A stretch of 64,000 nt of DNA from Oculina patagonica (Eukaryota), in NCBI RefSeq assembly GCF_052425735.1, contig NC_135759.1, positions 29,512,001 through 29,576,000 on the forward strand. Direction: 5' to 3'. Positions 3,066 through 4,877 of this stretch are shown in pieces; within the stretch, counting starts at the first letter, position 1; every line of letters begins with the position of its first letter. The translations under genes and the position numbers were made by a program. The notes under the pieces were generated by a model. It saw only the letters and a list, made by a program, of their open reading frames with translations. It did not search any database and was not told the origin of the DNA.

Positions 3066-4877
3066 CTAAATTAAATTCTTGACTTCAACCGCACTTGCCA
3101 CGCACGGAACAAGACGAATCTGGAGGGAATCTTCAACTCGCTTGTCTCCATCATCAAACAACACGTAGTACACAGCTTTCTGATAGCAGTTGGTGATGCC
3201 AGAATTCCTCTTGTATGTGACCACACCAGGGTAATACCTGGTTCTTCTCGGCCAATAACCAATTATACGCTGGCCAGCCTGGACTTCACTGTAACAAGGC
3301 GGCTTGTCGAGTATCACTGCCGCTGGATCAATCCTACGTAGAGTAATAGTGTCGCCATCGTCATAATTGATGAAGACCGTCGTGGAAGTGGCACTTGTAA
3401 CGAATCCGCGGTAGTAAAGCCCGTTTGTCCAGCGGGCAAATACTCTAGCACCCACTGAAAATGAACAATCAGGACATCAGTTGACTCTGGTCGATACAAA
3501 TGGCTATCAAGATATGTTTGAGCGATGTATTTATTAGTCACTGAATGTCCTGAATGGCACACAGTAAAAGAGAAGGATTTTTGGCTATGATTTTCTAAAA
3601 GCAATGAAAACATTAATCGCTAAATTTTCTTTAGAACGGTTTAGCATACTTGCGGAATTTCTGAATATAGTTGTTTTTTACAGATACATGTAAACATGAA
3701 GTGATGTATTATATATTGGTTGTATCTTGGAACAGACACGGGTTTTTTACTGACCTTCATGAGCGGACCAATGATCAGGAAAAGTCCTTAGCTGACTGAT
3801 AGCGTAGTAATCTTGGTCGTTGTCATCAAAGGTGACCTTGAAACGGTTGTCCGAATATCTATCAGACACATAACCGATGAAGTATTTTTGACCTCCTTTC
3901 CACGTAGCCAAGACGTGGTGTCCAATCTCCATTTCATGGGGCACATTATCGGGAATTACTGCTGAAATGTCCGAGATACTGTGGGTGATCGTGTCGTTGT
4001 CATCAAACAAGACACTCACCAGAGCATCTTCAATTGATGACACTTTTCCAGGGTAATAAAGGTTGTTCGTCCAACGAGCAATGATCCGATCATCAACTGT
4101 AAACAAAATGATGATAAGAATTACAACACAACTGATAACATAAACGTAAAGAGACCCAGAATAGTTTACTCAGTGAAGCCAGACTGATTTTGCTCAGGCG
4201 GGGAAGTGGGGAAGATTTGGCGCGATGAAGGACATTGTTGAGTGCCAACGTTGTCACGCCCGCTGTATTTTATTATTTCATTTCTCCTTGAAGATATTCG
4301 TATTAATAGCTTCATTTGGATTACTTCCAACAAGTGATTTATCAACCTCTTCTTCACGTTCCCTGAATTTGTTCACGTAAACATCAGTGACTTGAAAGTG
4401 ACATGCCAAGCACTACAACATTCGAATCCACTGACTGGGGAAAAGACTGCTATATATCATCAATATGCGAACTCCATCAGTCACCAGAACGCTTTAATCA
4501 ATCAAACTTACATAATCTTGTACGTCAGATAGCTGCGATGAACTCGGTAATTCGAGGCCGTTATTCTTGTCGATTCGTTCCATTACAAAACTGTTAAATT
4601 ATCTTTGCAGATTTCCCGCAACTTTCTCACGAAGGAAATTACAAAGCCGCGGCTAAGAGGCCTTTTTTCTTTCACATATTAGCAATGGCAATAGGAATCC
4701 ACTTCTCTAAAATTTGTTTTGTTAGTTTGTCTTTTGTCGTGTCAATAAACGGACAAAACTATTCTTTTTTCCACAACATATGAATGCAATTCCCGAACCA
4801 ATGCACTTACCATGAAACGGGTTTGAAAGGGCAGAGACGCTGAAAATAAAGCAGAGGACCAGCAAACCCTGCTTCAT
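3066..4877 (-). CDS. Secreted protein with four tandem Tudor-like (DUF4537/Agenet-like) domains; 3 coding exons, ~265 aa
   Basis: Exons 4877-4811 (MKQGLLVLCFIFSVSALSNPFH, signal-peptide-like), 4096-3755 and 3454-3066. All introns are GT-AG phase 1 and splice in frame (798 nt). Four repeats of (G/D)xx(V/I)xAxW...Y(Y/F)xGxV...VxFDDGD, the Tudor-fold signature. Confidence 0.85.

Follow-up and report, generated by a model that had tools for sequence, protein, structure and literature searches.

The window analysed here is a stretch of 64,000 nucleotides (nt) of the genome of the stony coral Oculina patagonica (assembly GCF_052425735.1, contig NC_135759.1, positions 29,512,001 to 29,576,000 of the forward strand). 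On its minus strand lies a gene with three coding exons (4877..3066), the coding sequence of which (798 nt) specifies a protein of 265 residues. The first exon encodes a putative signal peptide and the other two encode four Tudor domains, arranged as two tandem pairs. Tudor domains are known from textbooks as readers of methylated histones and of RNA-processing proteins within the cell, and among eukaryotes the fold has otherwise been known from inside the cell only. The reading that we favour, with moderate confidence, is that this expressed coral gene gives rise to a secreted protein of about 28 kDa that has four Tudor barrels, no catalytic function and an affinity for mono-, di- or unmethylated lysine-like groups. 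That the gene and its four-Tudor fold are real is hardly in doubt.

The gene and its transcripts

The coding part of exon 1 (4811..4877) starts with the ATG at 4877 and is 67 nt long, that is, 22 codons plus one base, so that it ends in phase 1. It carries the signal peptide region. Intron 1 (4097..4810, 714 nt) separates it from exon 2 (3755..4096), which is in phase 1 at both ends and encodes units 1 and 2, the first tandem-Tudor pair (residues 23-136). Intron 2 (3455..3754, 300 nt) is followed by the coding part of exon 3 (3066..3454), which encodes the second pair (residues 137-257, units 3 and 4) and a tail of eight residues before the TAG stop codon. All these features are on the minus strand, and both introns are GT..AG introns in phase 1. 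The spliced product is 100% identical over 265 residues to P0189, which is the NCBI 'uncharacterized protein LOC144644005 [Oculina patagonica]', and thus the NCBI pipeline has reached the same gene model. The clean, in-frame gene of three exons that a preliminary description had proposed from the sequence is borne out by the exact exons, by the introns and by this identity.

The transcript evidence comes from three studies, each represented by the assembled contigs of one run (X1, X5 and X8), which were mapped to positions 2400-6400. The label of these runs as RNA is a guess, the argument for it being that the contigs are free of introns. In all three runs the contigs skip exactly 3455-3754 and 4097-4810, and contain the joints 3454/3755 and 4096/4811. 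The whole messenger RNA, including the signal-peptide exon, is represented by a single contig of 1358 nt (X8 record 15), which runs from 4902 to 4811, from 4096 to 3755 and from 3454 to 2533. The joint between exons 1 and 2 had been named earlier as one to check; it is present in contigs of all three studies, among which no alternative first exon was found.

The contigs start at about 4896-4902 (X5 record 10 at 4896, X8 record 15 at 4902), which leaves a 5' untranslated region (UTR) of about 25 nt (4878..4902, minus strand). Upstream of it, at about 4942 on the same strand, there is a TATA-like AAATAAATATTA. The 3' UTR (2533..3065, minus strand) is about 530 nt long as judged from X8 record 15 and other contigs, and it reaches to 2400 or beyond in X5. 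The transcript depth in X5 is very high, about 680. Of the seven differences that the transcript contigs show in the coding sequence, five are synonymous. Contamination as the source of the gene is ruled out by the introns, by the spliced transcripts and by its position on a contig of 46.5 Mb. A tblastn comparison of the spliced protein with the window detected no paralogue within it.

The Tudor fold

Exons 2 and 3, each taken separately, match Tudor families above the Pfam cut-offs. The whole protein scores 61.5 bits with PF21744, the BAHCC1-like_Tudor family (cut-off 28), 57.8 bits with PF15057, known as DUF4537 (cut-off 27), 57.3 bits with PF18115 (cut-off 25.8), 53 bits with PF18104 (cut-off 31.4) and 50.3 bits with PF18359 (cut-off 31). 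The E values for BAHCC1-like_Tudor, DUF4537, Tudor_3, Tudor_2 and Tudor_5 range from 1e-13 to 1e-17. Matches to GBBH-like_N/DUF971 were below the cut-off and were not used. A profile of the family compared to solved structures identified KDM4A/B (E ~2e-13), SETDB1 (E 6e-12) and 53BP1 (E 7e-7).

An AlphaFold2 model, built from an alignment of 34 sequences of the family (A1), has a mean predicted local distance difference test score (pLDDT) of 90.6 and a predicted template modelling score (pTM) of 0.84. Residues 23-257 are confidently modelled as two tandem-Tudor pairs, and the confidence is low only at residues 1-20 and 257-265. The four barrels comprise residues 26-71, 83-121, 140-185 and 199-251 and contain 4-5 strands each. 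Since the strands of each barrel are consecutive in sequence, the modelled pairs look like those of 53BP1 and BAHCC1, and not like the interdigitated pair of KDM4.

In a structural alignment (VIA-align), residues 19-131 were superimposed onto the tandem Tudor of BAHCC1 (8ye8_A) with a Z score of 12.9 and a root mean square deviation of 2.6 Å for 113 of 126 residues. Other tandem Tudors, those of SETDB1 (Z 12.8), SGF29, SHH1 and UHRF1, gave Z scores of 9-12.8. The Foldseek matches were the Tudor modules of SETDB1 (E 4e-9), the four-Agenet module of AGDP3 and, again, the BAHCC1 tandem Tudor. A feature search of the ESM Atlas yielded scores of at most 0.80 and only generic Tudor/Agenet clusters. 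The two tandem pairs that were proposed to follow the first exon are therefore seen in the model, in the structural alignments to BAHCC1 and SETDB1 and in Pfam. Had the repeats belonged to some other fold, the proposal would have lost its ground; the model and the structure searches return the Tudor fold.

The N-terminus and possible extracellular hallmarks

The protein starts with MK, followed by GLLVLCFIFSVSAL and S-N-P, and this segment has an uncharged hydrophobic core of 14 residues. Small residues (V-S-A and A-L-S) precede residues 17 and 19, a polar stretch comes next, and residue 26 is the start of the first barrel. The hydropathy, taken over 10 residues, peaks at 3.16. By a heuristic that uses the n-h-c layout and the hydropathy maximum, the N-terminus has the appearance of a cleavable signal peptide, as had been suggested for the first exon, and it is this exon that is used in the transcripts.

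The same n-h-c layout is found in all 21 of the 21 full-length coral relatives, with hydropathy maxima of 2.3-3.8. The maxima of the Nematostella and FERM-linked cnidarian relatives, which are signal-free, are -0.5 to 1.0. In several relatives from intron-free contigs of 1-2 kb, for example L045 (2 kb), the signal peptide and four Tudors are encoded in one open reading frame (ORF). In paralogues L004 and L005 a single exon seemed to encode both the signal peptide and pair 1, but this was rejected, since the ORFs show that the apparent match is translated intron sequence. Two relatives have additional parts between the signal peptide and the Tudors: an EGF domain (PF00008, E 3.3e-7) followed by four Tudors in P0197, and a coiled-coil-like spacer in P0198. 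Shuffled extracellular modules usually have a phase-1 signal exon joined to a phase-1 domain exon, as the four-Tudor gene does.

The last Tudor pair has three cysteines, C190, C226 and C254, in accord with the preliminary description; a fourth, C9, is within the signal peptide. C254 is kept only in the closest subfamily. C190 and C226 are both present in 39 rows of the family alignment and both absent from 20, with one of them present in 15 (Fisher p 2e-7, a value inflated by the kinship of the rows). This co-occurrence would be the pattern expected of a disulfide. Judged from these features of the sequence, it is quite probable that the product enters the secretory pathway. Activity outside the cell, as proposed earlier, or at any rate within the secretory pathway, remains the best reading in view of the signals of all 21 relatives and, as indirect signs, of the EGF-containing relative and the cysteine pattern.

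The aromatic cages and the ligand

Each barrel contains a cage-like set of five residues. These are W31, Y37, F53, D55 and D57 in unit 1 and W88, F95, F112, D114 and D116 in unit 2, all encoded by exon 2, and W145, Y151, Y167, D169 and D171 in unit 3 and W204, Y211, F236, D238 and D240 in unit 4, all encoded by exon 3. A phmmer alignment places W204, Y211, F236, D238 and D240 of unit 4 on W1990, Y1998, F2020, D2022 and D2024 of the BAHCC1 Tudor-C. In the complex of BAHCC1 with H4K20me1, the methyl-lysine is positioned among W1990, Y1998 and F2020 and forms hydrogen bonds to D2022 and D2024 (PMC12219854). Alanine mutants of W1990, Y1998, D2022 and D2024 have their binding severely reduced or largely abolished, and the preference of BAHCC1 for the mono-methyl state was explained by the authors as steric exclusion of higher methylation by the two carboxylates (PMC12219854).

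Alignment to this solved complex confirms that all four barrels retain a predicted cage of three aromatic residues and two aspartates, so that the W, Y, F and D residues picked out in the preliminary description hold for all four units. In the coral family, counted over 42 rows of pair 1 and 74 rows of pair 2, most cage positions are 80-100% conserved, and the lowest (W145, W204, D171, Y211 and D240) are about 70% conserved.

The presence of two aspartates in every cage (F-x-D-x-D) would favour low-methyl or primary amines over betaine and choline. The latter two had been suggested as ligands earlier, and the two aspartates argue against this suggestion. Going by the sequence of the cages, we expect the targets to be low-methyl or primary ammonium groups rather than quaternary amines. 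The assignment of the ligand class to weakly methylated or unmethylated lysine-like amines is a tentative one.

The protein has a single N-glycosylation sequon, N56-D-T (residues 56-58, at about 3995-4003), which is located inside the cage loop of unit 1, F-D-D-N-D. The residue at position 56 is G in most relatives, and the Montipora orthologue reads N-D-S.

The coral family and its closest known relatives

The Oculina genome contains 38 exon-level matches to the protein, which correspond to about 15-19 genes. These are clustered on C2 (27.4-27.6, 31.71-31.73 and 36.0-36.1 Mb), on C3 (22.09-22.14 Mb), on C11, on C4 and on an unplaced contig. The break between the two Tudor pairs is always near residue 136 in these matches. 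The four-Tudor gene itself, at 29.51 Mb of C2, is a separate singleton locus outside the 31.7 Mb cluster. Outside Oculina it is matched best by a protein of Montipora capricornis (78% identity), which is closer than any of the Oculina paralogues (at most 66%), and the lineage of the gene may thus be older than the split between Oculina and Montipora. Further members of the family are present in Pocillopora and in the octocoral Paramuricea (P0203).

The ratio of nonsynonymous to synonymous substitution rates (dN/dS) was calculated against a relative with 68% identity, the DNA of the Montipora orthologue not being on record. It is 0.18 for the mature part and 0.51 for the signal peptide, and the mature part is under purifying selection. 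The calculated isoelectric points (pI) of the relatives span 4.5 to 9.4, a spread which suggests that the surfaces have diversified around cages that are conserved.

The tandem Tudor of BAHCC1 (PDB 8ye8), a reader of H4K20me1, has the same tandem-pair fold as the coral protein and an identical cage (W, Y, F, D, D). However, BAHCC1 is a large nuclear chromatin protein with a cage only in Tudor-C, whereas the coral protein has a cage in each of its four barrels, has a signal peptide and is devoid of any other domain. The sequence identity between the two is about 21%. The tandem Tudors of SETDB1, KDM4A/B, 53BP1, SGF29 and UHRF1 are similar to the coral protein in sequence profile and fold, but all of these proteins are nuclear, none has a signal peptide, and the KDM4 pair is an interdigitated hybrid. 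DUF4537 (PF15057), the family of vertebrate C11orf16-like proteins, matches above the Pfam cut-off, and the C11orf16 cluster is weakly similar in shape. The vertebrate proteins, however, are uncharacterised and intracellular and have other domain contexts, and the papers found to name DUF4537 do so only in passing.

The nearest relatives outside the corals are the Nematostella proteins A7SWQ8, LOC5502812 and LOC5502073 (40% identity, E 4e-65). They share with the coral protein the tandem-pair unit, the linker motifs and membership in a cnidarian clade. Unlike the coral protein, they have no signal peptide, contain 4-8 Tudors, a further C-terminal domain and a Pro/Gly-rich tail, and are presumably cytoplasmic.

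Several other architectures occur among the relatives. Proteins in which FERM and FA domains are combined with a tandem Tudor are found in cnidarians including a myxozoan (P0118, P0134 and P0102; Montipora, Myxobolus), and their Tudor pairs fall in the same clade as the secreted coral family. In P0136 the same Tudor pair is joined to an AbfB-like domain. Three giant stramenopile proteins of 1600-5100 residues (P0009, P0023 and P0038, from Pythium, Laminaria and Lagenidium) contain 20-29 single Tudor-like units; they belong to the same subfamily, come from oomycetes and a brown alga, and one of them is annotated as EF-hand-containing. A 46-residue 'hypothetical protein' from Thiothrix nivea (P0157, WP_154724416.1) clusters at an identity of at least 90% with the Oculina member P0010, and is probably contamination or a spurious call in the Thiothrix nivea assembly.

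The Tudor fold and the secreted bacterial architecture are already known, the one systematic survey that reports secreted Tudor versions having found them in bacteria only (PMC5906684). A literature search on secreted or signal-peptide Tudor proteins, DUF4537, the coral skeletal matrix and the cnidarian secretome did not yield a description of the animal family. A conserved and expanded animal family of secreted all-Tudor proteins, the NCBI members of which are 'uncharacterized', was thus not found in the literature and appears to be new.

Origin of the secreted form

An exhaustive, profile-free search with exon 3 returned 367 relatives, of which the Nematostella proteins are the nearest outside the corals. 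The cnidarian FERM-FA-Tudor proteins, the giant stramenopile proteins and a set of bacterial proteins are more distant. The bacterial relatives are about 245 residues long, have a signal peptide or a lipoprotein box and four Tudor-like units, and align end to end with the coral protein. The homologues in cnidarians and bacteria, to which the preliminary description had directed attention, therefore comprise a signal-bearing coral family, signal-free Nematostella proteins and secreted bacterial proteins of four units. The bacterial Tudor/chromo-like domains are consistently secreted and occur in 2-6 tandem copies (Kaur et al. 2018, PMC5906684). Their predicted ligands are methyl-lysine-like groups in murein or matrix peptides, and the eukaryotic versions were described as intracellular in contrast to them (PMC5906684). 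These secreted tandem chromo/Tudor-like proteins share with the coral protein the combination of a signal peptide and cage-bearing barrels only, and in P0142, P0235 and others the architecture is identical to that of the coral protein, but the bacterial genes are free of introns and their products are 21-29% identical to it.

The relationships were examined in a maximum likelihood (ML) tree of tandem pairs (64 rows, 114 columns), which replaced a quick tree of 109 rows; the latter was discarded as unreliable when a constrained tree proved to have the higher likelihood. The pairs of the Nematostella, FERM-Tudor and AbfB-Tudor proteins and both coral pairs (1 and 2) form a cnidarian clade with support of 98/97. 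The bacterial four-unit proteins form a clade of their own (99/90), and in several of these proteins pair 1 groups with pair 2.

It is conceivable, though unlikely, that an anthozoan ancestor took up a secreted four-Tudor gene from bacteria by horizontal transfer, with introns and expansion following later and binding of cell-wall or matrix peptides being retained. The full-length alignment of bacterial signal-peptide proteins with the coral protein at 21-29% identity agrees with such a transfer. So does the presence of the bacterial homologues on genuine contigs of Gemmataceae, Myxococcales, Verrucomicrobiota, Spirochaetota and Bipolaricaulota. In the ESM Atlas, too, it is bacterial proteins that agree best in shape over the full length (template modelling score, TM, 0.55), and a joint clade of the coral and bacterial signal-peptide proteins is not rejected by the approximately unbiased (AU) test (p 0.224). 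In the ML tree, however, the coral pairs group with signal-free cnidarian proteins and the bacterial four-Tudor proteins stand apart in their own clade. Moreover, the grouping of pair 1 with pair 2 of the same bacterial protein suggests that duplication took place independently in bacteria and that the four-unit architecture is convergent. The tree, with its separate clades and the pairing within bacterial proteins, thus favours a gain of the signal peptide within Cnidaria and a four-unit layout that is convergent with that of bacteria.

Possible function

If the N-terminal signal peptide is cleaved as predicted, it would lead the product into the secretory pathway. The mature protein of about 28 kDa would then be made only of four Tudor barrels in two BAHCC1/53BP1-like pairs, with no catalytic or membrane part. 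With four intact cages on two rigid pairs, it could serve as a soluble binder with four sites, either outside the cell or in a secretory compartment. The targets would be mono- or di-methylated or unmethylated lysine-like ammonium groups that are repeated on a surface or a polymer, and avidity for such repeated groups might allow the protein to coat, aggregate or cross-link its target, or to recognize a surface. Candidate surfaces are microbial envelopes, microbial surface proteins or peptides, as was proposed for the bacterial versions, and the extracellular matrix. A role in the recognition of microbes would fit the clustered paralogues with their divergent surfaces; we regard it as possible but doubtful.

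A different destination, which we consider rather improbable, is that the protein enters the secretory pathway and is kept as cargo or matrix of an organelle, such as a gland-cell granule or a nematocyst, or is laid down in the skeletal organic matrix, and that its DDxD loops bind calcium and not amines. A signal peptide by itself does not reveal where a protein ends up, the conserved F-D-D-G/N-D loops of the four units are acidic, and the depth of about 680 in X5 is as expected of a gland or matrix product. On the other hand, F-D-D-G-D is an ordinary Tudor cage loop, common to the nuclear proteins BAHCC1, KDM4 and SETDB1, and the relatives with their wide range of pI (4.5-9.4) are not uniformly acidic like the known acid-rich matrix proteins of corals. 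The family also has a member in the octocoral Paramuricea (P0203), and a full-text search on Tudor, coral and skeletal organic matrix gave a single paper, in which Tudor is mentioned once, as a marker of germline or dividing cells. That the protein is not exported at all, the hydrophobic N-terminus being non-functional or a membrane anchor of an ordinary intracellular methyl-mark reader, would agree with the intracellular location of all characterised eukaryotic Tudor proteins (PMC5906684) and with the lack of a signal peptide in the Nematostella relatives, the closest outside the corals, but is very improbable given a core of about 14 residues that is too short for a membrane span and has small residues at -3/-1 after it, the placement of this core right at the N-terminus in all 21 coral relatives, the EGF fusion in P0197, the lack of a basic cluster resembling a nuclear localization signal and of any other domain, and the use of only this first exon in transcripts.

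Several points weigh against the favoured reading of a secreted binder of lysine-like groups. Secretion is a strong prediction from sequence, the geometry of the cages in the four barrels is taken from alignment, and the pairing of C190 with C226 comes from co-occurrence in rows that are related to each other. Glycosylation at N56 could mask or block the cage of unit 1. We know of no extracellular methyl-lysine ligand in corals. The literature search retrieved no record of the protein in mucus, skeleton or nematocyst proteomes and no assignment to a cell type, and the roles in mucus, venom or immunity that had been suggested earlier are guesses. A run of polyA raw reads (X23) has zero reads on the gene, so its expression is not universal. 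The bacterial gene neighbourhoods offered no hint of a ligand, since the neighbours (AAA/DUF4143, PASTA+CARDB, PhyH, beta-helix and nitroreductase) are unrelated.

Beyond the single gene, the secreted four-site Tudors of corals might constitute an extracellular 'methyl-mark reader' system, in which diversified family members recognize proteins of microbes or of the matrix by their mono- or di-methyl-lysine or related amines, and which was derived from an intracellular chromatin-type fold in parallel with bacteria. This is a speculative extension, and we would not call it likely at present. If true, it would represent a class of soluble recognition molecules unrelated to lectins or to peptidoglycan recognition proteins (PGRPs). 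More generally, a conserved, expressed and expanded animal family of secreted proteins with nothing but cage-bearing Tudors would imply either that animals read methylated lysines or similar amines in the extracellular space or that the Tudor cage has been turned to another extracellular ligand. Both outcomes would have a bearing on coral-microbe recognition and on the recruitment of intracellular folds to the secretome.

Upstream DNA

A 24-nt motif, TTTCCCGYATGGATTMTGCYCTGA, is present in two copies in the window, at 4952-4975 and 21282-21305 (minus strand), where none is expected. Each copy precedes a signal-peptide exon, the ATG of which follows about 75-90 nt downstream, and the two exons belong to different genes. 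The first coding exon of the second gene (21193-21127) is also exactly 67 nt long, ends in phase 1 and encodes a similar peptide. The pattern fits a shared 'secretion cassette' or a common cis-element.

A decayed duplicate of the promoter and first exon is found 600 bp upstream of the four-Tudor gene (5416-5535, minus strand). It matches 4816-4886 with 73% identity over 75 nt, and the region of the upstream motif is part of it. The duplicate reads ATG AAG CAA TGT TAG, with a stop at codon 5; this stop and the lack of a transcript joint to exon 2 rule it out as an alternative first exon. A short element at 5546-5587 has a very high summed transcript depth (400-500) in all three contig runs, and many different loose ends flank it on either side. 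It resembles a repeat common to many transcripts more than a part of the four-Tudor gene.

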